This document shows positions 2,641-64,000 of a DNA stretch of 64,000 bases, one piece after another. This DNA comes from Paragordius varius (Eukaryota > Animalia > Nematomorpha). The notes under the pieces are model-generated. The model had not been told where the DNA came from. It did no database searches and worked only from the letters and a program-made list of their open reading frames with translations. How positions within the stretch are numbered: the first letter of the stretch is position 1; every line of letters begins with the position of its first letter. The stretch covers positions 1,488,001 through 1,552,000 of the forward strand of contig OZ176059.1 of NCBI GenBank assembly GCA_964247055.1, read 5' to 3'. Both the position numbers and the translations under genes were made by a program.

Positions 2641-3279
2641 AAATAATAATTAAATTCCCTTAAATTTTTTACAAAAAAAAACCGGTATAAACTTATGACT
2701 ACACTTGATACTCCTTATAAATAAAGATATATTTGAAATAATTTCCTCTCTTATACATTTATTTAGTTGATTAGTATGTGATTTAATTTACACAATGATT
2801 TAAAAATTAAACGAAATAATGCAGATTTAACAAGTCTTAAACAACAATTATAATAAGATATGAATATAAATTCAAAAAATTTGAGCCATATTTCTTTCCA
2901 ATCTTTAAAATGGAAATTATAGTGACAAAATGTAAAAACATAAAGACAAATATTTTATAAAAGACGATAATATTTCAAAACTTGATTATTTATACATAAA
3001 TTATATTTATTTCTGATTTTCATTAATTGTGTTACCAATTAACATTTCTATTCCTTTATCCGCAATTCAAAACGATAAACACAAAAAAGTTTTACATATG
3101 GTATTATGCAAAAAAATATGATTGCCTTTATATTTTTACATTTTGTCTTCATCTTTAAAATAATATTTTTACTGTATCTATGCAAAAAATTATTTATATA
3201 ACAATAAATATGACAAATAATTATTTCAAAAAATTGGTTCCATCTTTCAATCTTAGTTCAACTGGCTAATTTAAGGTAG

Positions 3280-6200
3280 TTATTTGGTTTTAAGTTCTTG
3301 GGCTGTCTTCATTCGCGACAAACGATGTGTAAACAATTGTTGAGCGTATGCATAAAGTTTGAGGTCGAGTTTATTAGCTCGTCGTATGTACCGTCGGACA
3401 GCTTGTATCCGTGGACTATAATACGGACATACATGGATACCCCGACCAAGTAAGGTACTTATCGTAGTATCCAAATCATCAATATGGTGTGAAGCATGAT
3501 CTATGGGTGTACCTACGCCCCCATTTCTAAGTTCCACCCCAAAAGCATGGGAAAACAAGGCCTTAGTTCCATTTATATCCTCCAACAAACCAAAAAATTG
3601 AAAACGGTCTCGAAGATTGCGTTTAGCCGAAGCTAACATATCACGTTCAGCGGCTTTGATTTGCTCCCGACTAGGTGAGTAGATAATAAATGTATAATAT
3701 ATTGTACGATAAATGTTTGGTTTTTGTCAAAGAAACATTAAATAAATAGTATAACTAAATATTTTAATTTCAATAATCATAATGTAATTTCGTGCCGGTT
3801 GGCACTCATCGTATTGTCCTTATTTATTAAAGGTCACGGATCTTCAAATTGTATACATGACTCGAATACTCTAATAAATTAATATTGGGATTATAATTCA
3901 GTTATAATTGAATGAATTTATTAAAGTGAATTTTCGGTTACTACAAGTAATCTTTGTCAATCGTAAAAATAGAATTAAATATAAATTAGAATATAAATTA
4001 AAAATAGTAAAATTAGTTTATTTTTAAAAACACATATAATTCAATTTCGTTTTATATATACCATTTGCACTTCAAGAGTGTCCTTGAACAGTTTGGTCCT
4101 TGAACAGTTTAAGTGGTCCTTGAACAATTCAAGTTGGTCGTTAAAATTTAAATTTTGATTTAACCATAATTTTTCATTTATTTTTTAATTTTATTATTTA
4201 TAAACCTATTTTTTTATTTATTATATATTTATTCATTTTAAAATAAAAATTTTTATTGACAAACCACTTTTTTGTTTCAAACTATTTTTTTTCAATTGAA
4301 CAAAATTATTGACTTTTAAATGTTTTTAATAATAATTAATAACACAGAAAACTTATATCATTTCGAGTTAAAATCTTATAAATATCCAAAATTTTAAGAA
4401 TTTAATAAAGATATACTGTTTCTCAAAGATTATAAGTTGATTTCGATTTAAAATTTATAAATTATAGAAAATAGGTTAAAAACAATAAAATAGATAAATC
4501 ATTTACGTTTGATTGATAAAAATTAAAAACAAAACAGAAAAGTCAAAGGACCAACTTGAAGTGTTTAAGGACCAACTTGAAATGTTCAAGGACCAACTTG
4601 AACTGTTTAAGGACCAACTTGAAGTGTTCAAAGCTGTTCAAGGACCACCTTGAATTGTTCAAGGACCAACTTGAACTGTTCATGGATCAACTTGAACTGT
4701 TCAAGGACCAACTTGAACTGTTCAAGGACCATCTTGAACTGTTCAAGGACCACCTTGAATTGTTCAAGGACCAACTTGAAGTGTGGACACTCTTGAAGTG
4801 CAAATGGTATATCAAAAAATTTAAAATGGTTGAAAAACTAATTCCGATATTAATTGCCTTTTTTTGAATAATAATAATGGAAATACATGCGCTCACCCTT
4901 ATATATAATCCTAAGAAAATATTGGATCAAGATTTATTTATTATAAATTTAAATTGCCAATGTTGGGCAAACAGAGGCATAGCTATAGAAGGGGTACAGA
5001 TTTTACAAAATCTTGATTTTATTTCGAAAAATAGTATTTAAAAGAGCCATAATTTTAAATAATACAGATAAAATGACCCATTTAAGAGTTCGGTTTAAAA
5101 TTGATTTTTTAATACAAGGGGTCGCATGGAGAGGGAGCTGATGCCAGAAATGCAAGCTACGCCTCTGTGGATACATGCACTCTTTTAAAATAATCTAATG
5201 GCAAATTATTATTATCTGTAGAAAAACAGTTTTTAGGTGTTTTTTAATAGTTCACCAATATTGAACCGTATTTTGTAGTTAATAAAAAAGCCTCACATTT
5301 CTTTCAAAGATTTTCAGGCAGGTTCTTTAATATAATTCGGTACTGGATTATGGTCCAATTAAAATTTAGTAAAAGCATATCTGGTTTTGAAGCTAACATA
5401 TATACCCCAAAAACTTTTAAAGTTTCTTTGTTTGTTGTAAAGGGATTACTATTACGATTACAATACAATTATAAAAGCATAAAACAATCGATTATTGCTG
5501 AGGCTTAAAAAGGTTGTTATTAAATAAAAGTTATAAACTATGTGTACATTTAAAAAATATCCTGGAATTAAGCAGCAAAAAAATATTTTAATTCCAATTA
5601 TAAAGCATTATGCAAAATAAAATTAACCATCATCGTACCTGAGAGTTGAAGTGTTTACACACACATCCAAAACATATTGAGGATCACTCAAATGTTTTGT
5701 CATGCGATTGTTGGCCCAATTCGTAGGGCATGTCGCAAATTGTTTAATTGACAAAGGAACTAACGAATTACGTTTTCTTCCTTTTTGTTGGATTACAGTA
5801 GAAGTATTACTACGCTCTATGGTATCATTCCCACAAGAATTTGCAATATATTTGGGTGGTTTTTTAAGGATCATACTACTGATTTGAGTATCTAAAGCTC
5901 CATCTTGCCCAGATTGTGTCGGTGGGCAAAGAATGAACGATCCAGGCCAGGAAACCCCTTGTAAAACAGTGTTTGCATATTCACTCAAATACCGCATCAT
6001 CGGTTCACGCAACATAGTTATGTAATAGTATCTATGTACGTGTAGGTAGTATATACCATTTAGACTTCAAAATCACTTCTTGAAGACTTTAAATTCACCC
6101 TCGAACATTTGTAAATAAGTTTTTGGACTTAATGAAATCAATACTGATGTAAATTATTTCTTTATGACACAGATTTATAATTGTTTTGTATTATTTTATT

Positions 6201-7653
6201 TTTGACAAAATTTTATTTTTTATATATATCAAATATAGGTATTTTTTATTTTTAATATAAATTTATTTTTAGGGTAAATTTAAAACGTTCAGGATAAATT
6301 TGAGTGCATAAGGGTGAATTTAATATATTAGTCGTTGAAATATTCCAGTGTATAATTATATAATTGTAAAAAAGTTTGTTTTAAACATGGGAAAAAATAA
6401 AGTCAAAAACGGATATATCGATACTAACTTACGTGTACTTTAAACCCGTTAATAATTTTTTAATGTTTGTTAAATAAAAATTTAATTTTACAGTGATGTG
6501 AATCTTAAAAATTTGATTTTCACATATGTCCTTATAAAAAATAATTTTTATGCTTAATAATAAGGTTTAACCACCAAGGAATTTGAAATACAATATGTGG
6601 CCAAAACACTTTAAGTCCATTTTTTTGCACAAATAGAAAACTTTTTTTCGAAAAAAATTTTAAGAGTTACTAAATCACAATATATAAAAATTAATACTTA
6701 TAACTACCTAGATTCAGGATGGTATGATCGTTTAAGTCGTTTCTGTAATTTTTCGTAATACATTTTGCCACGTGGTTTTATTACACCCTTATGGTATTCG
6801 AGCCCGTATCTACGTAAGTAACTTCGTAAACTTTTTTGAATCTGGCTGTTGGAAAAAGCATTAAATCCATCATTTTCCTGATCAATATCATCATCATTGA
6901 TTGTTTTAGTTGTTTGATTATTATTTTGATTAGTTCTGTCAGCTTTTAAAACATTTTCGCCCCCGTTGGTCGTCAGTGAAGCGTTTAAATGTAATATAGA
7001 CCTTAAAGCTCCAACATAACCCGCAAATGGAAGACAATCCCTTGTTTGTACATATGTCGCATGAACACCACAGTATGACCAACCATGGGTAGCACGGGTT
7101 TGTAACCTTTAATATTTTGTTTTAAGAGCATGAAATTATTTTAGAAAATGGTAAAAAAAGATTAATTAAGTTGCAGAGATTTTTGGTATTAGTTAGCCCC
7201 GTTTTTAATTTCTAGTTTTTAAATCTAAAGGTGAAAATATCTGTATGTGGGCTCAATCAGAATCGCATTTTATATTAGTTTTTAGTTAGTATTAATTTAA
7301 TCTATGATTTGATAAAAAATATTTAAGTTTCATATACATCAAAAATGAAATAATTAATTTTAAGAAAAGCATTGAAAAGCTTCTTAAAAAATATTTTTTC
7401 CCACATTTGCTAATAAAGTATCTTTCAATTCATGGACGAGTTGGTTATACCCAATCAATTATGATTTTTTTAGTTAATATAGCTTAAAATATACTCTCCC
7501 CTGGTGTTCAAGTGTATGGTAAAATCTATTTTTCTCTATAAATTTTTCAAAAGACTATTTAAACAAATTTTTCTGAAGTTCATACAAGTATATTAATTTA
7601 TCCGATCTTGGTTGATGGTTCCCAACCTGTAAATTTTTTTATAAAAATTAAAA

Positions 7654-7698
<45 letters not shown>

Positions 7699-10600
7699 TG
7701 CTAAAGTCGATTCCGACTAACTGCAACATTGAAAATAAAGCTTCTCCATTCACTGCGATTTCCGGTTTTGGTGTTTAGGTCGGATAATGATTGGTTGGTT
7801 TCTTTAAGGATGTTATCCATCCAACGAGTTCGTCTTCTCCCTCTTTTTCAGGCACCACTCACTTTCTCCAGCATCAGTGATTTTTCAAGTGAGCTGGATC
7901 TCATGATGTGCCCGAAAAAGAAGAGTTTTTGCCGTGTTAAGCTGCCAAGAAGTGACATTTCTGGGTTAATTTTATTTAGAATGGTGGTGTTTGAAACTTT
8001 GTCTGTCCATGTTGTTTGGAGAAGTTTCCTCCATACCCATAATTCGAAAGAGTTTATTAGACGTTCATCATATTTTTTCAATGTCCAGCTTTCCCCCCCA
8101 TACATGAATGTGGGGAAAACTGTAGCTTTGATTAATCTGATTTTGGTTTGTAGTTTAATGTCATGTGACATCCAAATCCTGTTATATTTAAAAGTTACTG
8201 CTTTAGCAATAGCAATTCTTCGCTTTATTTCAGGCGTAGAGTTGTTCTCATTATTAATAATGCTACCTAAGTCGTGTAGCTGCTAACTGTTTCGATCTGG
8301 TTGCCGTTGAGGATTATTGGATTGGTTTGAGCCGGATTTATTTGCATGACTTTTGTTTTTTTGAAATTGATATTTAATTCAAATTTATTGCATTCAGTTG
8401 TAAACACTTGCAAGGCTTGCGATAATGTGTCTACACTGTCTGCGAATAAGACTGTATCATCCGCGTAGTGAACGGATGTAAGTAGGTTCCCACCTACGTT
8501 GCCGTAAGTTTGTGGGATATTTCTTATAATGCACTCCAGGTATGCGTTAAAAAGAATTGGTGATAAAACGCATCCTTGACGGAGGCCGACTTGTACCTTA
8601 CATGAGTCAGATATACCGTGAGGAGTAGATACTACAGCCGTGGAATTTGAATAAATTGAAAATATGATGTTGATTAAATGTGTTGACACTCCGAGTTGTT
8701 TTAGAGCTTTCCGTAGTTTATTGTGCTGGATGGAATCAAATGCTTTGGAAAAATCGACAAAGCACATATGCAATTCTTTGTTAAATTCTATGTGTTTCTC
8801 GATTATCCACCTCATGTTACATATCATCGGCATCCTCTACCTTTTCGAAAACCAGCCTGAATCGTGGATATCTCTGGGTCAAGAATGGAATTTAGACGAA
8901 ACTGTATTATTTTTAGAAAAACTTTGGACACCTGGTTTATGAGCGCTGTGGTGCAATAGTTGTCACACAATTCTGGGTTACCCTTTTTTAAAATCGGAAT
9001 CATAATGGATGTGCACCAATATCATATTTATCTTAGGCGATTTTAACTCAATCATCGGAACAGACAAAACACCTCCTATGACGGGCGGCATGGGCTTGGG
9101 CATAAAAAACGAGAGAGGAGACAGATTGATTGAAATTTGTGCTAACCATCGTTTCTTCGTCGCAAACAGATTTTTTAAACAGCCCAAACGACGTCTATAC
9201 ACATGGCGCTCCCCGTGTCAAAGATACCGTAACCAGATTGACTTCATATTAGGTATGGTAAAATACAAAAGTTCATTTCATAATGTCAAATGCCTACCAG
9301 GATCGGATTGCTACAGCGACCACAACCTATTGATCGCCAAACTCCGAATTAAATTACAACTTCCTATAACATCCAAACCCACAAGAACAAGATTAGATTA
9401 TGATACAATCGACGACAAGTTTAGCACCGCTTTATTAAATCGTTTCGATTGTCTTGATCATAATTCCGAAAACTATCAGGATATAAACTTTTTTTGGAAC
9501 GATATATATACAATCTGCCGAGACACAGCCGACGAATTCTTTTGGCCTCTCAAACGCAATAAACAAAAAATAAAATTGTCAACCAAAAGTCTCGAGATCG
9601 CAGAAAAACGTAAAGAATCCAAAATCAAATGCATATGGGATGAATACAAACAACTAAACAGTGAATTTCAGAAGAGTGCAAGAGAGGACACAAATAAGTA
9701 TTATGACCAACTATGTGAAAAATTAGAAACAGACGCCAAAAATAACCAAAACCTCTTTGCCCATGCAAACAATATTATTCCACACAAAAAAGTTTTTTTA
9801 TAAGGGACCTATGAGAAACGACAACAACTCAATCGTCACTGAAAAAGACGAAATTCGCAAACTATGGCACAAACATATAAACAAACTATACAATGTAAAT
9901 AACCCCCAAACTATTAACGAACTTACTAAACAAAAAGAACCACCTATTATGAAAGAAGAAGTGGAACTCGCTATAAAACACTCTAGCACCGGTAAATCAG
10001 AGGGCCACAAAGACATCCCTACTGAAATAATAAAATACATTCCAATCGATATACTCACCAAATTATTTCAAACCATATTTGAGATGGAAAATTCCTGAGG
10101 ATTGGTGCACACACATATATATATATATATATATAGGATTATAAATAAGACAGCCCGCGTAACTGGATAAAACAAGGTCCTATTATGAAACAACTTTGAA
10201 ATCCTATAACCGGTTTAAAAGTAAGGTTCAAAAATTAATTTAAACTACATTCCGGGCACTTTTTAACAATTATGCACTACTACCCATTTCTTTGCGAATA
10301 ATAACACTTCATATTTCGATTACATTTTAAAAATATAATCGATATAACTTTTATAAATTCGTATCAATATAAATATATTTTATACCAGCTATCATTAAGG
10401 CTTTGGAGTTGTAAATATTTCCTGTAACTTTTAGCACTCTCACCTTTTTTTGCCATCCATGGGTAAAGTAACGTTTTATTTATTATGCCAACAACTGGAT
10501 TAATTACCGTTATATCTTCATCATCTTCAATGGTTTGTTGGCGGCTTTGATAAAATAGGGTATTAGTAATAATTTCGTCTTGTTGTTTAAGGGACGACGA

Positions 10601-11176
10601 TCTAGGACATTGACAAATTTCTTGAGTGTTTTTACGGATAGTTCCACGGCCTTTTTTGCTTAACACTTCATTCGCATTATTTGTCGCCTTAAATTTGGCC
10701 TGACATGCGCAGGGCGGTAATGAGGCGATAGATTGTGTTAGAAATCGATTAAAACGACTCCCTCCCGTTTTTTGAATGTGAACGAAGGCTATGACATCCT
10801 TGGTGACATCAAATTTGACCGGGATAAATGGATCAATCAGGATTTTTGTTTCATCAGTTTTACTTATATTGTTATCAGATTTCGGCATTTCAACTTTTTC
10901 ATCATTTATACTAATATTGTCCTGAGATGCTATAATGAAAGGCAAAGTAGAGTTTATTAGGACAGTTGATAATAAGGGTTTTACATTTTTAATCTTTGCC
11001 ACAGATTTTGGATTTTTGTTATTACCTTTATTACTAGCGTTTGGTAGTTGTTTTCGTAAAGTTGGCTCTGGTTGAACCAAAACAGCATTGATGATTGGAA
11101 AGAATTGATTAGATAGCACAATTATGGTAATTAATAGATGATATAATATATATATTAATTTGGAATTGCTATTCAT
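3280..11176 (-). CDS. HS6ST: Heparan-sulfate 6-O-sulfotransferase, 657 aa, 4 exons
   Basis: Exons 11176-10386, 7106-6708, 6031-5639 and 3670-3280; all introns are GT-AG and phase 2, and the CDS is 1974 nt and open. It has an N-terminal hydrophobic anchor, the 5'-PAPS loop VIAFVHIQKTGG, GWSYCGVHA, YYYITMLREPMMRYLSEY, CPTNWANNRMTKHL, LASAKRNL..FQFFGLLE and NKLDLKLYAYAQQLF, all matching the HS6ST family. Confidence 0.93.
4059..4809. mobile_element. Foldback MITE, type I (TACCATTTGCA termini, 21-bp GAACACTTCAAGTTGGTCCTT subterminal arrays)
   Basis: Starts TACCATTTGCACTTCAAG and ends CTTGAAGTGCAAATGGTA; the 21-bp repeats are inverted between the two arms. Lies in HS6ST intron 3. Confidence 0.85.
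4972..5167. mobile_element. Small hAT-like MITE
   Basis: Terminal inverted repeat CAGAGGCATAGCT / AGCTACGCCTCTG; the flanking 8-mers match only 5/8, so it is old. Confidence 0.45.
7685..10111 (-). mobile_element. RTE/BovB-like LINE with inverted 5' segment, in HS6ST intron 1
   Basis: The minus strand 9020->7685 carries the RT (WCTSIMIPILKKG, FVDFSKAFDS, GLRQGCVLSP, YADD) and a (CAA)n tail. The plus strand 9021->10111 carries the endonuclease C-half and linker (ILGDFNS, NQIDFIL, SDHNLL ... IPEDWCT). Both sides are flanked by (TA)n; the site is empty in unit B near 36200. Confidence 0.9.
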
Positions 11177-12189
11177 GGCACACGGTTGTTGGTTTTATAA
11201 AATGTAAAACGTTAAAAAACTGCTATTCCAAATAGGTTTAGAAGAATGATTTGACAATTTTTTTATTCTTAAGATATATATATAAAGTCTTCCCTTGAAT
11301 ATAAAGGTAAAAATAAGCCGACGATAATGTATGATATTATCTATAAAATCCGAAAAATGGGTCAGTCGGTTCGTTATTGGCGTGAGTATGAGAAAGAAAT
11401 ATTAGTATACGTTGTTTTGTTGACATAAAAGCTTATATCACTTGTTTAAGCTTTTGAGCAAATAACCTATTCATTATTTATTAAACCAGAGGCGGGGGCC
11501 TTTATTTTTACATAGGAAATGTAAAAAAAAATGTAATCTGTATATATCCTGTTAAACCGGTTATATATTTGATTTATTCAACATTGAAAAACTATTTCAA
11601 TGATAATATCCAATCATCAAATACTATATATAATAGGTGTTGTTTGTATGGGCGAACAGATTAAGGGTAAGGAAAAAGGCTATTTAGCTACACTAAATCA
11701 ATATTAGATTTAATATGGACGGGTGTAATAAAAAATTATTTGTTTTTAATTACCCGAATGAATGTTGAATTTAATTTAAACATGGCTGCAAAAAAATAAA
11801 AAATAAATTTGAATAAAATGAAAGAAACATATTGTTAATGTGTAAAAAACTGTTTGTTTGAAACAAAGCTAAATATTTTACGCTTAAAGTATATGCTCGC
11901 CAGCCGATGTAATACAATAGATAATTGACCTCCAAAAAATGTTTATTATACCCCTTTACCAATTTTATTGGGCAAGGTAAAGAGAGGGGTAAATACATAT
12001 TGTCAAAATGTTTAGGTTATACATTAGTATATATATATTGTAAAATGTGGATTAATATACCCAATTAAGGCATATGTTTATGTAACCTATAATCTATTTT
12101 GGGTTAAAAAAACAATGGATTTAAAAGCTGTTCAATAATAATTAAATTTTTTACAAGCATAACGTAGTAGAAACGTTAGGCATACTAGA

Positions 12190-13615
12190 CGGGAATAGCG
12201 ATCCAAAAAGTGTTTGGCCTCGGGTGGCTAAAAAATAGAGAGGCGGGAGTTAAGGTGTGCGGAATAAAAGATGGTAGAAATCAGGTTTATAGAGAGGCAT
12301 GGCTGAAAGACGAAAGAATAATCCCGAAATCTCGAGAGAAAAGTAAAGCTTTTAAAATGTCGATTTACCTATCATACAGAAGACAAGGAAAAAAAATATA
12401 TAAGCATTAATAAGGAACTTGGAAGGCTTGTGAGATTAGTTAAAAAAGAAAAGACGCCATCATTTTATGAGGAGTTAAACAGTAAGCATGGTTTGAACAA
12501 AGTTTTTAAAATTTCTCAACAAAGATACAGAAGAAAGGTGGACTTGCCCCCTTACGCGACCCCTATTAAAGACAAAAACGGCAAATTACTCGTTGAGGCA
12601 GCGAAAATTTTGAAGAGATGGAAAGAATATTTTCAGGACCTTGAATTGGGCTTCAGTGAAACGAATTTACCCGAAACACCAGATTATATATCGCATATTG
12701 AAAGTATAACAAAGGAAGAAGTCCAGGCTGGTTTAGAAGAGATGTCTATAAAAAAGGCTGCAGGCCCAAACGATATTAACATAAACTGTTGGAAAATAAT
12801 GTCAGAGAAAGGTATTGAATTTTCGTCGGATATTAATGATGTAGTTACTACAGGTATGATACAAACCGAATGGAAGTAGGGTTTCACTGTTTCCATTATG
12901 TATAGGATATATTTATGATTGTAATAATTACAGAGGGATAAGATTGATGTCGCATACAATGCAATTTGAGAAAATACTAGAGAAACTAATGAGAAAAATG
13001 GTTAGCATAGAGGGTAATTAATTTGGTTTTATTCTATGAAAGTCTACCATCGATCCGATTCACGAAGTAAGAAGGCTAATTGAAAAGCGTATGGAAATGA
13101 AATAGAAGCTGCATGGTATTTTAATCGATATTGAAAAGGCGTACAGAATACCACGGAGTACAATATGGTGGAGTTTAAGACGGAAAATTTTGAAAGTTAT
13201 ATTAATAAAAAGCATGTACAGCTCTCGCCATACTAGGATTGTCAGATCCTATTGAAATAAACCAAGGCGTCTATCAGGGGTCAGCTACAGTCCGTTGCTA
13301 TTTATAATATGCATGAACAAAATTTCAAAAGATGTGGGGTAATATAGTGGCTGATATTTTCTTTATGCAGACGACATAATAGTGCTATCAGACGAGTTGA
13401 ATTGAAAGAAATAATTAGCAAATGGATTGATGTGTTACGACGGTGCGGTTTAAAAGGTAATAAAAAGAAAACGGAGCTTATAAATTTTGATGGGAAAAAA
13501 CGAAAAACGGAGGGAAGTATATCTACTTGAGACACTTTCAACCGTTTTCAAGGATAGTAAATAAAATGTTGGGTATTAAAAGGTCAGTCGGAATGCAAAT
13601 ATTTAGGAGTTATTT
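12190..13615 (+). mobile_element. Degenerate RTE-type LINE fragment
   Basis: ORF 12430-12879 (IKDKNGKLL...LKRWKEYF...ITKEEV...KKAAGPND), then broken RT with YADD (~13365) and KYLGV (~13600). Absent from unit B. Confidence 0.75.
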
Positions 13616-14707
13616 TAGCAACATTTAATTTTATATTGGTCTGGGTTATAGAGATACCCCAACTTGAATCGAAGTGTTAAAAACATTGAAAAAAAGTTGA
13701 TCTTGCAATCAATAGATATCAACTTCTTGCTGGTAAAATATAATTTGAACCTTGCAGAAGTTATTTATTTACCTTTCCAACCGTAATATTATTTAACTTG
13801 TCTGTAATATTAGCGATTTAACACATTTGATACAAGTTAAGATATCTAACCTCAGACAATATTTAAGTTTGTATTTTAAAAACTACTGAATGGTACCAAT
13901 TTCAATATATGCTTTTAATAAAAATTATATAAATAAGCCTAAAAACTAAATAAAATTTAGTTTTGAAAAGAAAGTTCCATACAAACTATTTCGGCGCCAT
14001 TTTGATTTTACAACATTTTTAAATATCGTGCTTATTTAATTTTAAGGTCAAAATAAAGCTATTTTTTATTTTAATCGCATCTAATATTGATATAAACATA
14101 AAATATAGCTTATTTTTTACTTTTGAATTTAGCTAAGCACACATGTCATGTTGACTAAATTACCTTTGGGTATTTCCTTAAAATAATAAAAACAAGAATT
14201 ATTAATTATATATTTTTTTATTTCGATTAATGTTACTATGTGTATAATTTTACCATGGTTTAAATTCCTTTCATATTCTTTGGAGTATTTAATTTTAAAC
14301 AGTGGGATATCCAACTAACTAAATTTGAATCGAAGGACAGAAATGAATGTATTTTATTCAAGTGTTAAAATAATTGATAGAAAAAAATGGCGGCGAAAAA
14401 AGTATGAGAATTTTTTTACGTATCATTTTATAACGCTGAACGATAAAATATAAAGAAAGCGTATTTTTAAATTAGGAAATTTAAGATAATTTAAATCTGT
14501 CTGGGATATAAACTACCAAATGGACACGAATATTAACCATAATAAAAATAAGTAAATTACCATATTTTTGAATTAATACCAATGCTAATTTTTATATATA
14601 CTTTTCAACAGGCTCTGGGGTATAAAATTACCCTAAACATAAAATGTTAAGTAGATGCAAAAATGCTGGCATTTTATGATAAGTATATTCAACATATACT
14701 ATATACA

Positions 14708-17700
14708 TAAGGTGACCAGATTTTTTGTAGGAAAAAGCGGGAAATATCTGAGAAGGGGGGGGTGTCATTGGGGGGTACAACCAAAAATTTTTATACAAAA
14801 AATTTATTATTTATTTATTTTTAACACAAATATTATAAATATAAAAAATTTGTACCTCACAGGCTGTTTGTACCTTATTCAATAAATTAACATGTGCACG
14901 AACAAAGGGTGAAGTGATTGTAATATTCTAGAAAAAAATAATAAAGACGAAATCATCACAAAGTGCGCTGGGTGATGCAAGAAGCGGCACAAAAAATATT
15001 ATTAACAATTTAGCGAATAATCTTAATCAAAACATTATTGGTAAACAGCGCTATTCAAACAGCTACTGATTAGTTACCCCTGGATGTGAAAAATATAGAT
15101 GTTAAAATGCTTGGATATTGTAGAACTGTTGGTTAGCTCTTTTGCCAGCCATTGAAATATTTATAAAAATGTGATCTCCTAGAATCCTATTTTTTATCAC
15201 AGGACAAAAGTCAAAATTCCAAGTCAAAAAAGGTTAGAAAATAATTTTATACCATTACCTAATCGCAATATTATAAAGCATCCAGAAAAACAAGGCTCAA
15301 TGTATAGCCAGAATATAAAAATGATTTATACAAACAGAAACGATTATTTGGAAGACAAGACGTTGTAATGACACTTTTTTATGATATCTCATTATTAAAT
15401 AAATATATGAATGAAAACTTATATTATGGACAACAGAAAAAAATACGTAGGATAGAAATGGTTAAAATAATCATTTTTAAACAAATTATGTTCCATAAAA
15501 TAATATAATTGTAGTATTTGCATTATCTTTCCCTAAACCACTGCTATTGAACGCGTTTTCACACAGTAAAGTAAGTAAGGACACGGAATCAAATTTAAAT
15601 GTCGAATAAAAGCCATTTTATGTGTTCAAATATAATTTGACAAATTGAAGACTTATACAATATTTAAAGTTATTTTGTTTATTTTTTAACATAAAAACTT
15701 TATAAATATAACAAAATATTTTATTTTTTGGTATATTTTTGTTTGAGTGAATGCGTTTTAGCAGATTGTCATCATTTTAAATATTGTAGAAGTCAAGAAT
15801 TTGTCAAATTATTTTTGACAGATAAAACGGCCTTTAAAGTTTCAACATTTAAATTTGATTTTTCCGATGTCCACACCTGATTTACTGTGGAAAAAACACG
15901 CTCAGTAGCAGCGTTGGTTTCAGGTAAAGATAGTGCGAATCCACGATTTTTAAAATATTATTGTATGTAATATAGGCTTCAAAATGATTAAATATTTCCA
16001 ACCATTTCTTTTCTACTGTATATTTTTCTTTTGTCCATAATTTAAGTTTTTCATTATTAACATATCTATTAATGATACTTCAGAAAAAAGATCATTTTCT
16101 GAAAGATTACTTTTTGAAAATTTTTGGGAGCATATATAATTAAATGATTTTTGAACATTGCACCAATTAAATTCTGATTTTAATGTTATCCAATGAAAAG
16201 GATCAATTTTATTGAATTGCGTCGTCCAGTCTTCCAAATAATCTTTACAGTTTGTATAAAACATTTTTATATGGTACAGGATATCTTGGCGATTTATTAA
16301 GCCTTGTTTTTCTAAATTATTTATTATATTGCGGATGGTTAATGGTATAAAATTATTTTATAACCGTTCTTGACATTGGAATTTTAGGTTTTTAACTTCA
16401 TTGGCTACTTCGATTGTCGAAATGTTGTCACCTTCTATAAATTTAATAACATTTTGAAAGGGAGAAGCTTGATTATGTAAGAATTCTAACCATATTTTTG
16501 AAGAATCATTTTCAAAAAACTTTTTTAAAGTTGCAGGACATTTGTCCTGTGATAAAAAAAAGATTTTAAAGGATCATACATATTTAAAATTCTTTCGATA
16601 GCTGGCATAAAAGCTAACCAACGAGTTTTACAATATCCAAGCATTTTTTATTGAACTTCTGCATTTTCACAGAATTCTTTAAGCGTTTCAACACGTACCG
16701 TGTATATATAAAAATAGGAATATATTTTAACAACTACATTTTCCACATCTAGGGGTAACAAATCAGCAGCTGTTTGAATAGCGTTGTGTATTATATGCGC
16801 TTCACACCCAACGCCAATAATGATTAGGATTATCTGTTAATTTATGAAAAATATTTTTTGTTCCCCTCATTGCTTTTCCACCAAAGTTGGTATGGTGTTG
16901 TCAGCGCAATATGCGATTTTGTCTTTTAAATTATTTTATTCTACAATATGCATTATTAAAGTAAATATTCTTTCGGAATTTTCACCGGGTAGAAAAATTA
17001 AATCTAAAAATTTTAATTTTTACTCCGGTTTCTGAATCAAAATATTTTATTAAAGTGGGAAATAATTTTGTTTCATGGTGATTTGATGCATCAGAGTATA
17101 GGGATAAGAAATTAATTTTCAGCAAATCTTTTATTTCAGAAAATGCTCGTGGCGAAAGGACCTTGCACACAATGGCTTAAGCCTTTGTACGGGCACATGT
17201 AAATTTTATTTGGAATAACGTGCAAATAACCTGTGAGGTACAGTCCATAGATCTAAAGGAATGATTGTGATTAACGGCGTGGAAAGATAACACGCCCTCA
17301 GCTAGTGCCAAATTCTTTTCTTCCTCTCCAAAAGCGGTTTTTTGAAAAAAATCGCTCCTTTTGTAAGATGATGCCGCCATATCTAAACATTTTTTATGTT
17401 TCTGTGTTTTCATATGCTTTGTAATATCATGCTTGTCGTCATATGCTAGGTTGAACGCATATAAGACATTTAACAGATGATTCATTCTTCGTTTTTTTGA
17501 TAAAAGGAAAATCTGTGATTAATTCATCGTTGAATTTACAACCTCTTTTTGTGCTCATATTTATAAACTACTATTAGTATAATAAATATTATATTAACTT
17601 AATTTTCTGGAATAAACGTGTAAGGTACCGATTTGTGGTATCAATTTGTCTTTTAAGCTACCGATTTGTGGTATTTATTTGGCTTTTTAATAATGTTGGG

Positions 17701-58959: not shown

Positions 58960-59597
58960 TATCACGTACCAACCTTATTACATACATCATTTTACTAATA
59001 AAATTTATTTTAAAATCAAACATTATATATCGAAAACGCCATAATTTTACAGGCGTGATTTCAAATCAATGTAACATCTTACTTGGCAAATTATATAAAA
59101 AATACCGTTAAAATCACACTTTAAAGATATGTATGTATATATATCTATTTGGTTAAAGAATTTATTAAACCTTGTTATAGATGTTATTTTTTAGAAATAA
59201 TATCATATAATGAATGATTCAATAAATGTTTGTATCATTTAAGGCTAAAACATACATTTTATGTTATAAAAGTGGGTTTTAAAAGTTAGATTATTTTTAT
59301 ATATATACATGTAGTATGATTATTCAACAATGAAAGTTTTAAAAAAACTATATTTTCTATCTCCTATAAACAATCACATATACATGTTAAAAATTCTGTG
59401 GAGATTAAAATAAAATTTTGGATAAAATTCGAGCTAAAATATATATATAGTATGACGGCAAGATTGCTTTCGAAAAACTCTGATTAAACACAATTTTGGT
59501 TGTTAATTAAACAAAAAAACAAAAACAAAAATTAAATAAATTATAATGGTTAAAAAATTATGTAATATACACAAAAATATGCAAGTGTGTTAACCTA

Positions 59598-59630
<33 letters not shown>

Positions 59631-59825
59631 GTATATATAACACATGATTTTCGTTTTGTTCTGTATTATAAAAAAAGGGCCGGAGATATATAACTTTAAA
59701 AAATGCGAATCAAATTTTATAGTATTTTCATTTAAAAAGAAAAATGTATCAATCAATATGACACACCATGTGGGGCCTTTTAAAAAAATCTAAAATAATC
59801 TATCATAACCAAGATATACAGCCCA

Positions 59826-62536
59826 TTATTTGGCAATCTTGATAGCTTTTATAAGGTAACCCTTTTCCTTTATAACTTCCCGACTCTTGATAGTTATAAT
59901 GTAACGAAGGACAAAATTGAGTTTCCATTGTTCATAGGTTTGTTTCAACAAGGGTTTTATGCCCTCTCGAAAATCGGTGTCAGATAAAACTTCTATGTAA
60001 CACATAAAAATTTATATAGTTGTAAAATAAAGCATAAAGCATAAACATAAATTAAGATGCCAAAAACAACGTTTTTGCATTAAAACTACAATCAATCAAA
60101 CCTCTTTTGTGAGCGACAGACGAAAATTTATGAAAAGTGACATTTTTACAGCTTATATTGTCAGAATTGATTCGTATATAGATGCAAAATAATATACGGG
60201 AAGAATGTGCACAAAAAATTCTTATACATTATAACATAATAATCTGTGAATACACTCATTTGACACTAAAATACGAATTTCGTTTTAATGTTTGTCATTC
60301 TTTTTTTTAAGTTTATAAACTATACTTTATGAAAGATAATTAATAACAAGATTCTAATACAAAATCAATTTTAACTACAGTGAAAATTTAATTTTTCAAA
60401 CAAACTGCAACATCTAAAAAGTAAATAGCTTTTTATCGATATTCCATATATTAACTAAACTAATTACAACTGAAATATATAATTTGTCAGTGTTATATCT
60501 AAAATAGAATGGAATGATGTGATCTATTTAAAAAATCCGCACAAAGAAGCTACGTTATTTTTTATAAACCATTTACAGTTCAAATTCACCCTTGAAGAAA
60601 TCAAATTCACCCTCGAACAATTCAAATTCACCCTAAAAATAAATTATGTATTTTCGAACTAATAAAACTCATTATTAATATTAAATATATGTTTATGTTA
60701 TAGTTTATTATTTTACAGTATTATTTTAATTTAAAACAAAATTTTTATTTTTTAAAAGTATATAAAATATTGGTAATTTTTAATCTTAAAAAACATATAT
60801 TTTATGGTGAATTTGAATTGTCTAAGGGTGAAATTGAATTGTACATGGTATATAATTATGAACACAAGCAAGAATAAACGTTAAAAAAAATACTGTATTT
60901 ATCATTGTGAGTCAATAAAACTACACCATTTTCATCGGCATAATTTGTAAGATCTTCGGGGACAATGCATGAAAGTACAGAGTTTATTTGATTGCTAGAT
61001 GGTTTAACCTATTTAAGTAAAAAAATTAATAAAAATAGGTAAAAATTTAGTTTAAAAGAAATCAAAACTGATATATATAAAATATTTTTTATGATTGGCT
61101 AAAGGCTATAAAATTAACTAACCACCACCATATACAAAAAATAGCTAGATATTTGGCACAAAATATACGCAATATCATGGCAAAATTCGATAATAATTAT
61201 TTATCAATAAAATGGCCTGAGGGGAGTATTTTATTTAAAATATATGCATATATTCAGGTATAAACTTTATAAAATTGTTTTTATGGTGTTGTGACGAAAA
61301 ATAGTATCAAATAAGTAAAATAATTCGTTGTTATGTACAAATTAAGAACATACAACAATTTTTGTTTCCGATTTATTTTAAACGACGTGAATTATGAGTA
61401 GGCAAATTTATATTTTTTTTGATCAACTACTTTTTTGATTATACGAATTGTCTAAAAGATGATTTTGACTAACTAATGCGGGGAAAAAACATTATACCAA
61501 ATGTAAAAATGATTGCATTTAATGTATCCTAACCATATATTAAATATATATATATATATATGCAATATATAATACTTTGGCCCAACTGGTTAATGCTTCA
61601 AGTTGGCTCTTGTTAAGATCGCTAACACCCATATGTACGACTTTAGGGATGGGGTTATTTTTCATAACATTGTTACAATAATTAATCGTTTCATTACAAT
61701 TAATATCGCAATGTGAATTGCAACAAAGATTATTATTATTATTTTTAAGATCTGTATTATTGCAGATTTTAAAAGTGTAACCATTACATGGTTTGTGTGT
61801 GTCATGAGAATTGGGGGAAGATATATCATTTACGCTGTTTTGAAGGTTGTTATTGTTTATGGAATTTTGATTTAAATTTTGGGAAATTGGTTTATTGCAA
61901 TGCTCACCGTTTGTGCAAACATAAGAGCTGTTTAAATTAGTCGGATCCATCATTGAATGTGATAAAGTATTATTATTATCAAGTGAATCATAATTTTGAT
62001 CACATAAAGTTTCGGCTTTAGCCCAAACAGGCTTAAAATCCTCAAATTTAGTTTTGTGACGACAGTATTCGGGAAACGCGATAATGAGTTGATCCAAATT
62101 ACTAATATCTAATTCAGTCAAAGCTATAAAAATAATATAACATAATAATAATATACCAAATTGTACTGCTTCTATCACGATATCAGGATTCCATTCGTAC
62201 ATAAAAAGTTTGGCTATAAAAATATTCAAAATATAATTTACCACTAATTTTTAAATTTGAGCGTTGTTCAGAATTTCCATTTGTATCATTTTTTGGCAGC
62301 CGAAGAATTAAGGGGAATTCATTATTCTAATAATATAACCTATTATTACTACATTTATTTGTTGTTGATCTTCATATTTTTCATAATGTGACACGATCCG
62401 CGTAATGATATCTTTGAGCTATCAAATTTAAATATTTTCTAACCTCTTCTGTGCTATTTTTATCCTTAAATGGGGAATAATTTAGGATATTTCGCGAGCT
62501 AATGTATAAAATATTGGTGTGTAATTCGTCAATCAT
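59826..62536 (-). CDS. GCLM: Glutamate-cysteine ligase regulatory (modifier) subunit, 376 aa, 7 exons
   Basis: Exons 62536-62444, 62418-62353, 62326-62242, 62213-62157, 62123-61576, 61008-60894 and 59992-59826 (1131 nt open). Motifs EQRSNLKISAKLF, LDQLIIAFP, HMGVSDLNKSQLEALTSWAKVKPSSNQIN, PEDLTNYADENGVVLLTHND and VLRYIITIKSREVIKEKGY match GCLM. Confidence 0.93.
60568..60850. mobile_element. Foldback MITE, type II, in GCLM intron 6
   Basis: ACCATTTACAGTTCAAATTCACCC x3 ... GGGTGAAATTGAATTGTACATGGTA. Confidence 0.8.
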
Positions 62537-62643
62537 ATGGCCTAAAATTAAAAAATGATTATGCCTTTTGATTAGCACACATGCATTTGTAAATTTTTAA
62601 ATTCACGATAAAGTCAAATTTTTTATTGGTGGTTTGTTTTTTT
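62537..62643. promoter_or_regulatory. Putative bidirectional promoter between GCLM and TPK1
   Basis: Only 107 bp separate the divergent ATGs; inferred from gene geometry, with no motif identified. Confidence 0.55.
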
Positions 62644-63813
62644 ATGAATGGTTGCCAAAATATTCGACAAAAAATTATTAATCCATTAAGTTGGATTAAA
62701 AATTCAACTAAACACAATTATGCACTTATAATATTAAATCTTAACCTTTTTAATCATGAAGAAAATGAAAACTTGCTATGTCCATATTTTAAAGTTTATC
62801 AAAATTTTATTCATTCGCTATGGAATCAAGCCAATATTACAATTATAGCCGATGGGGGAATTCGGTTATTACATAAAATTTGGAACAACGGAAAAAGAAA
62901 ATTTATTCCAGATTACATAGTCGGAGATTTCGATTCTGCTCCATCAGACCTATTAACCCTGTTTCAAAATTTGGGCTCTCACATAATACATTATCCGGAT
63001 GAATATCAAACAGATTTCACAAAGTGCCTTAGGATTTTAGCTAAATTGTATCCAAATTTTTTGCAATTTTTTGATGATTCAAATTTTACACAAGTTGTGC
63101 CATCACTACCGGGTCAATCTCTCATAGGCAACACTAATTTTGCTGATAACACCGATGGATTTGACATTTACGTTCTAGGTGGCTTACAGGGACGTTTTGA
63201 TCACATAATGGGTGCAATTAATACGCTCCACATTTTTTATAATAAATATGCCCACTTCAAATCACCGTTGTTAAAGCATGAGAAACAACAGATGGATAGC
63301 TATAACTTAACCCAGGTACCAACCATTGTTTTGTATTCATCGGAAAGTCTTGCCTTTCTTATATATCCTAAAATTAAATATTACATTTATATACCGGCCA
63401 AGTTTTATACGCTTTCATGCGGTATCATTCCATTTTATGGATCTCCCTGTAACGGCATCCAAACACGTGGTCTACGTTGGAATTTGCAATCATCTGACAC
63501 ATTGGCTTGGGGTCACATGATTAGTACATCTAACCGTTACAATGTAACGGAAATGAGCGACATGCCAAATGATAGCCAAACGATTGTTTGTACAAAAAAT
63601 TTGAATAATGGTATTTTAGCCAACAATAAAACACACACCAAAGTAATTTGCTGTGAAAACGTTAATGAAAATTTATTATTTCAGGTGAAAAAAGACAATG
63701 CAACTTCCACTAATAGGGATGATGGGAAATATGTATATATATATTCGGACGTCATTCCAGTTATTTGGACGATGGAATTACCTGATGATTTGTTTACATG
63801 CAGTGAAAGTTAA
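62644..63813 (+). CDS. TPK1: Thiamine pyrophosphokinase, 389 aa, single ORF
   Basis: First ATG at 62644. Motifs YALIILN, IIADGG, PDYIVGDFDS, TDFTKCL, GGLQGRFDH, CGIIP, TRGLRWNL, MISTSN and VIWTM. Confidence 0.95.
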   Translation: MNGCQNIRQKIINPLSWIKNSTKHNYALIILNLNLFNHEENENLLCPYFKVYQNFIHSLWNQANITIIADGGIRLLHKIWNNGKRKFIPDYIVGDFDSAPSDLLTLFQNLGSHIIHYPDEYQTDFTKCLRILAKLYPNFLQFFDDSNFTQVVPSLPGQSLIGNTNFADNTDGFDIYVLGGLQGRFDHIMGAINTLHIFYNKYAHFKSPLLKHEKQQMDSYNLTQVPTIVLYSSESLAFLIYPKIKYYIYIPAKFYTLSCGIIPFYGSPCNGIQTRGLRWNLQSSDTLAWGHMISTSNRYNVTEMSDMPNDSQTIVCTKNLNNGILANNKTHTKVICCENVNENLLFQVKKDNATSTNRDDGKYVYIYSDVIPVIWTMELPDDLFTCSES

Positions 63814-64000
63814 TTATAAGTAAGCAGGAAATGTTCATAACTACTACAAGATTATTCCGATATTATATTGTTATTTGCATAAATTGCTCTTGTTGCATTA
63901 TTATAGTGCAATAGTTATAGTGTGTCTCAATCCGATTTTTTCAGCTATTACCTTAAATAATAATACTCATTTGTAATATGTTTATCTTATTTGTTACGTT

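Follow-up and report, generated by a model that had tools for sequence, protein, structure and literature searches.

Probable introns of 25 to 33 nucleotides at ancestral positions in a GCLM orthologue of the hairworm Paragordius varius

When 51 animal genomes were surveyed, introns shorter than 30 bp turned up only in myxobolids and in Dicyema japonicum (PMC13644364; Mol Biol Evol, September 2026). Nematomorpha are not mentioned in that survey, and the word "intron" is absent from both the Gordionus genome preprint and a comparative preprint on Mermithidae and Nematomorpha; within the literature that we searched, ultra-short introns in a nematomorph are unpublished. The tiny introns of ciliates are depleted in lengths that are a multiple of three and carry in-frame stops, and those that are retained and either contain a stop or are not a multiple of three in length are caught by surveillance (PMC5014332). 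Here we describe a gene of the nematomorph Paragordius varius in which four consecutive introns fall into this size range. The window that we analyzed is a stretch of 64,000 nucleotides (nt) of assembly GCA_964247055.1 (contig OZ176059.1, positions 1,488,001 to 1,552,000), and on its minus strand lies a gene that we file, from its predicted protein, as an orthologue of GCLM, the regulatory or modifier subunit, with an aldo-keto-reductase-like fold, of glutamate-cysteine ligase, an enzyme of glutathione synthesis. The explanation that we favor, and that we regard as very probable, is that this is a functional hairworm GCLM which would have kept the ancestral metazoan seven-exon structure while its first four introns were deleted down to 25 to 33 nt.

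The GCLM gene of the window

The gene model consists of seven exons of 93/66/85/57/548/115/167 nt, which specify 376 codons plus a stop, and six introns of 25/26/28/33/567/901 nt, all of them GT..AG and all with TAG at the 3' end. Removal of the four tiny segments leaves one open GCLM frame of 376 codons; unspliced, the frame meets stops within exon 2. The conserved motif SAKLF is reconstituted only by joining the sequence across intron 3. The last two exons were placed by tblastn with Gordionus GCLM against the window, and the junction sequences fix the model. For the four tiny introns, the coordinates, lengths, and termini given by an earlier sequence-only reading of this DNA, together with the exon sizes 93/66/85/57, proved exact to the base. 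The parts of the gene, in the order of transcription, are as follows.

62444..62536, minus strand: exon 1, 93 nt; ATG at 62536; start like that of Gordionus (MIDELHTNILY versus MFDDSHISTIY)
62419..62443, minus strand: intron 1, 25 nt, GTTAGA..GATAG, phase 0
62353..62418, minus strand: exon 2, 66 nt; size as in elephant shark and Dimorphilus
62327..62352, minus strand: intron 2, 26 nt, GTAGTA..ATTAG, phase 0; 25 nt in a second individual
62242..62326, minus strand: exon 3, 85 nt; size as in elephant shark
62214..62241, minus strand: intron 3, 28 nt, GTAAAT..TATAG, phase 1; 26 nt in the second individual
62157..62213, minus strand: exon 4, 57 nt; likewise 57 nt in shark, Gordionus, Dimorphilus, and Sycon
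62124..62156, minus strand: intron 4, 33 nt, GTATAT..TATAG, phase 1; a multiple of three and stop-free
61576..62123, minus strand: exon 5, 548 nt; contains an Asn/Cys-rich insert of 112 codons at 61660-61995
61009..61575, minus strand: intron 5, 567 nt, GT..AG, phase 0
60894..61008, minus strand: exon 6, 115 nt; 90% identity with Gordionus; 115 nt in shark, Gordionus, Dimorphilus, and Asterias
59993..60893, minus strand: intron 6, 901 nt, GT..AG, phase 1; contains a transposon-like element at 60562-60855
59826..59992, minus strand: exon 7, 167 nt including the TAA stop; conserved C-terminal motif RY..IK.R..I..KGY

The four tiny introns have a GC content of 0.09 to 0.19 (81 to 91% A+T), compared with 0.30 to 0.35 in the exons; for intron 1 the value is 0.16, against 0.31 in its flanking exons.

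The identity of the gene as GCLM, which the sequence-only reading had asserted, is upheld by the matches of the spliced protein to named GCLM proteins and by the GCLM fold of the model of its Gordionus orthologue. A word-index protein search with the exon 4-5 translation had as its sole match the "glutamate--cysteine ligase regulator" of Gordionus sp. m RMFG-2023, the Montseny horsehair worm, and the two hairworm proteins are 67% identical across 258 aligned columns. BLASTP of the spliced protein gave two high-scoring segment pairs (HSPs) with Gordionus (E values of 4e-61 and 3e-53) and two with elephant shark GCLM (3e-27 and 6e-12), which cover both halves of the protein around the exon-5 insert; the sea urchin and amphioxus proteins matched at 6e-26 and 3e-24, and a second HSP in the N-terminal half was present in most comparisons. 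Gordionus is by far the nearest relative, with 59 to 78% identity, whereas no other animal exceeds 42%, and on this ground the genome is most likely that of a nematomorph other than Gordionus. When Gordionus GCLM served as the query of an exhaustive HMMER search, 394 relatives were returned, every named one of which is a GCLM; the GCLMs of animals other than Gordionus were reached only by HMMER and not by the word-index search. In an alignment of 37 GCLM proteins, the window protein keeps all 7 invariant and 16 of the 17 near-invariant columns. From an adjacent Cys-Cys pair, SCC in most aligned relatives, it keeps the first Cys only (LSCIV). For the fold, the Gordionus orthologue was tested in place of the window protein: the AlphaFold model of this orthologue has a mean confidence score (pLDDT) of 90.3 and structural similarity (TM) scores of 0.89 to 0.90 to mouse, rat, and human GCLM, compared with only about 0.4 for true aldo-keto reductases. 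A PDB sequence search with the separate exon translations gave nothing useful.

Intron positions and lengths in other animals

The intron map was built from the GCLM loci of seven other animals as exon chains with GT/GC..AG introns that translate exactly to the annotated protein. Each gene had one unique splice solution, and all were placed on one MAFFT alignment; the sea urchin locus was left out of this map. Four of the exon series are given here for comparison with the window gene.

Elephant shark: 135/66/85/57/203/115/167 nt, stop codon excluded
Gordionus: 90/69/82/57/206/115/155 nt
Dimorphilus (annelid): 114/66/76/57/83/108/115/194 nt
Sycon (sponge): 93/54/82/57/104/96/54/61/197 nt

All six introns of the window gene equal those of the elephant shark in both alignment column and phase. 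For introns 1, 3, 4, 5, and 6 this agreement in column and phase extends to Dimorphilus, Sycon, and Gordionus. Intron 2 shares its column with the shark; wherever it is present it has phase 0, and elsewhere it lies 1 to 6 columns off in a variable loop. The position and phase of intron 1 are common to seven of the eight animals, sponge included, those of intron 4 to six of the eight (five besides the window), and those of intron 5 to shark, Gordionus, Dimorphilus, Asterias, and Sycon. Only some of these intron positions are present in Asterias and Tetranychus, and the structure of the amphioxus gene has been remodelled. A rough calculation from base frequencies puts the chance of finding four GT and four AG dinucleotides exactly at the intron columns at about (0.05 x 0.05)^4 = 4e-11.

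It follows from these matches that all six GCLM introns predate Bilateria, and they support the view that the four tiny ones would be shrunken ancestral introns, as had been proposed from the sequence alone. That proposal had leaned on exon sizes and phases given for human GCLM and had called for a comparison with public gene models. In that comparison the intron positions coincide, and the shark, used as a proxy for vertebrates, agrees at the 66, 85, 57, and 115 nt exons and at all six phases. The shark gene thus resembles the window gene in its seven coding exons, in the columns and phases of its six introns, and in the equal sizes of exons 2, 3, 4, and 6. It differs in the length of its introns (132 to 3,024 nt) and in exon 5, which has 203 nt versus 548 nt in the window gene, where the 112-codon insert accounts for the excess.

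The Gordionus gene (locus 3001-14949), whose model comes from an annotation pipeline using RNA-seq, shares the seven-exon structure and the start and end of the protein. Unlike the window gene, it has no exon-5 insert and its first four introns are longer, measuring 43, 45, 215, and 10,595 nt. At intron 4 the two hairworms differ about 320-fold (33 versus 10,595 nt; Gordionus locus 3602-14196), and the long Gordionus intron has no long open reading frame (ORF) except one of 157 amino acids. Because the orthologous Gordionus introns have these lengths, the shrinkage of the first four GCLM introns, as judged from the gene structures, is lineage specific.

In our best reading, a deletion bias would have cut the first four introns to near the physical minimum of the spliceosome. 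They would be ordinary U2-type GT-AG introns, presumably removed via intron definition, with splice signals reduced to a 5' GTA or GTT and a 3' TAG in A+T-rich sequence, and introns with transposon insertions would stay long. Counted from the start codon, the first four introns are also the four smallest, an arrangement with a chance of 1/15 in this one gene, and the two shortest introns of Gordionus (43 and 45 nt) are likewise its first two. This polarity of intron length along GCLM is only suggestive. We put forward tentatively, with belief and doubt nearly in balance and doubt slightly ahead, that this lineage may be a third independent animal group with introns of less than 30 nt, one that, unlike dicyemids and myxobolids, has them in a transposon-rich genome where they would cluster toward the 5' ends of genes and long introns would persist farther downstream. 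If this were true, intron minimization would not be a mere by-product of whole-genome compaction; it would follow a position-dependent rule instead, for example promoter-proximal, cotranscriptional intron definition.

Evidence for splicing and alternative explanations

The locus was found only in four sequencing runs (X1 to X4) from two samples and was examined over positions 59300-64000. Record 16 of X2 covers 60814-63469 without differences, and record 26 of X4 covers 61754-62714 and so runs across all four tiny introns. The second individual (X3/X4) differs by about 2% substitutions and by small indels, which amounts to high heterozygosity or to divergence between populations. Two of these indels lie in tiny introns: 2 nt are missing at 62237, which brings intron 3 to 26 nt, and 1 nt is missing at 62332, which brings intron 2 to 25 nt. 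The other indels that are not a multiple of three are an additional nucleotide at 61044, within intron 5, and two of a single base that fall beyond the coding sequence, at 62637 and 59781. Exon 5 has two indels, +TTG and +TAT, both of 3 nt. Over 61754-62714 the indel list is complete, as the listed indels sum to the 10 gap letters of X4 record 26. In the spliced frame, at least six of the single-nucleotide polymorphisms (SNPs) in conserved exons are synonymous and at least two are nonsynonymous; both SNPs listed for exon 2 are synonymous. Because introns 2 and 3 contain indels that are not a multiple of three, exon indels are multiples of three, and SNPs are mostly synonymous, these data support the conclusion that the tiny introns evolve as noncoding sequence and the exons as coding sequence in the spliced frame. 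One polymorphism, at 62422, alters the A of GATAG in intron 1; since it is polymorphic, this A is unlikely to be the branch point. T-rich runs stand before the TAG in introns 3 and 4 only. The natural length polymorphism (28 versus 26 nt and 26 versus 25 nt) provides material on the shortest intron that an animal can splice.

Several observations weigh against our explanation. All four runs are genomic DNA, with contigs that pass through every intron, and the RNA-labelled runs under the same species label contained 0.00 of the sampled locus words, so that we infer the excision of the tiny introns from RNA. The SNP counts given above are minimum counts. Four introns are too few to define a branch-point motif. 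Intron 4 is a multiple of three and stop-free, and the reading frame alone is therefore blind to its removal. Finally, the separate exon translations had no match in Pfam.

One could in principle ascribe the four segments to frameshifts introduced by assembly or sequencing, or to the decay of a pseudogene, and animal introns of less than 30 nt are indeed commonly taken for annotation artefacts (PMC13644364). The absence of the locus from the RNA-labelled runs would fit this as well. We nevertheless find this explanation highly improbable: the segments are present in contigs from independent runs of two individuals, their GT..AG termini stand exactly at ancestral intron positions, and the rest of the gene has an uninterrupted frame of 376 codons, retains every invariant residue, and has polymorphism that is mostly synonymous. 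The sequence-only reading had also argued that they are not frameshift errors, and it is borne out by the DNA of two individuals, which carries the segments and has length polymorphism inside them that is not a multiple of three. A different idea is that the segments are removed from DNA rather than from RNA, by programmed elimination like that of the internal eliminated sequences (IESs) of ciliates; the IESs of Paramecium are similar in size to segments of 25 to 33 nt. This seems to us barely conceivable. No joint that skips 62124-62443 is among the joints listed (15 of 38, from the four DNA runs), and every contig there passes through the segments, although contigs can hide rare forms. In addition, the ends are GT..AG and not TA..TA, and other animals have spliceosomal introns at these positions.

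Intron 4 needs separate consideration. It is in frame and without a stop, as had been pointed out earlier, and its retention would read G-ILLLCYIIFI-A. It may be kept wholly or in part, and GCLM would then gain 11 hydrophobic residues (GILLLCYIIFI), be it constitutively or in an alternative isoform beyond the reach of nonsense-mediated decay. Besides the open frame, this segment is the longest of the four tiny introns, and in ciliates with tiny introns the class of retained introns that are stop-free and a multiple of three is invisible to surveillance (PMC5014332). We think such retention unlikely. The GT..AG termini of the segment are exact and stand at a phase-1 position common to five other animals, its translation faces a gap of exactly 11 residues in every orthologue, and its GC content of 0.09 is the lowest in the whole gene. 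Its site corresponds to codon 100 of the Gordionus model, within a helix (residues 91-104) that is confidently predicted (pLDDT of 95 to 98), and an 11-residue hydrophobic insert at this place would probably disrupt the fold. When the interior of the intron was shuffled with GT and AG fixed, 35% of the shuffles were also stop-free, and a third of lengths are multiples of three; for these reasons one stop-free intron with a length divisible by three is unremarkable among four. The sequence-only reading was therefore right that the intron is stop-free and a multiple of three in length, and it placed too much emphasis on this, as the chance is about 1 in 3 and the insert would break a helix. Taken together, intron 4 would be a normal intron; by the reasoning laid out for ciliates (PMC5014332), its occasional retention would evade nonsense-mediated decay, and the resulting protein would probably be misfolded.

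Neighboring features and tiny introns in other lineages

The insert in exon 5 (61660-61995, minus strand) consists of 112 Asn/Cys-rich, low-complexity codons between the conserved LCD and PKV motifs. It is absent from Gordionus and from every other GCLM examined, and where the exon is undivided elsewhere it has 203 to 206 nt. The insert is stop-free, compared with 0 of 20,000 shuffles, and has strong codon periodicity. It is polymorphic, with 3-nt indels and, among the listed SNPs, at least two synonymous and at least three nonsynonymous ones. We considered whether it could be a missed intron and rejected this: excision at the sole long in-frame GT..AG pair (62003-61752) would cost the protein the conserved Cys-Asp of LCD, and the codon periodicity and the shuffles also rule it out.

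Repeats are found in both long introns. An (AT)n microsatellite lies at 61533-61572, directly after the donor of intron 5. The element at 60562-60855 in intron 6 resembles a miniature inverted-repeat transposable element (MITE), with about 294 nt and terminal inverted repeats of 50 nt that are 84% complementary; its word depth of about 1e6 in all four DNA runs indicates an extremely high-copy family. A joint from 60654 to 62133 in X1/X2 was dismissed as a repeat artefact, as its shorter side has 23 letters and it starts in this high-copy element. Upstream of GCLM, a thiamin pyrophosphokinase gene (62626-63813, plus strand) is a single ORF of 395 codons with matches to PF04263 (4e-26) and PF04265 (2e-8). 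The two genes stand head to head with their coding starts about 90 to 110 nt apart, a compact pair in a repeat-rich region. Within 59000-64000, no RNA family was recognized by Rfam.

Shrunken introns in a hairworm would have practical consequences. The default minimum intron sizes in gene finders and RNA aligners break such genes, and this may inflate apparent gene loss in the phylum. What is added here is one gene in which every tiny intron is ancestral, the lengths of the counterparts of these introns in another hairworm, and evidence at the population level that the tiny introns evolve as noncoding sequence and vary in length.

The ciliate introns, including those of Paramecium (about 25 nt), belong to the same size class, and the surveillance logic worked out for them applies to GCLM introns 1 to 3, whose lengths are not multiples of three (PMC5014332). 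Unlike ciliates, P. varius is an animal and uses the standard genetic code, and one of its four tiny GCLM introns is both a multiple of three and stop-free. The closer parallel is with Dicyema japonicum and the myxobolids Henneguya, Thelohanellus, and Myxobolus, which like the present case combine GT-AG introns of less than about 30 nt, conserved ancestral positions, and a parasitic lineage, and in which the splice signals are similarly reduced, to roughly GTA...AG (PMC13644364). There are also differences. The median intron of dicyemids and myxobolids has 22 to 27 bp and their splicing is backed by long RNA reads (PMC13644364), whereas the window gene mixes tiny introns with two long ones (567 and 901 nt) and its splicing is predicted from DNA. 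Further features that set the window gene apart are the TAG at all six 3' ends and the transposon insertion in one of the long introns. Even with these differences, the GCLM case argues that a nematomorph belongs on the list of animals with introns of less than 30 bp.

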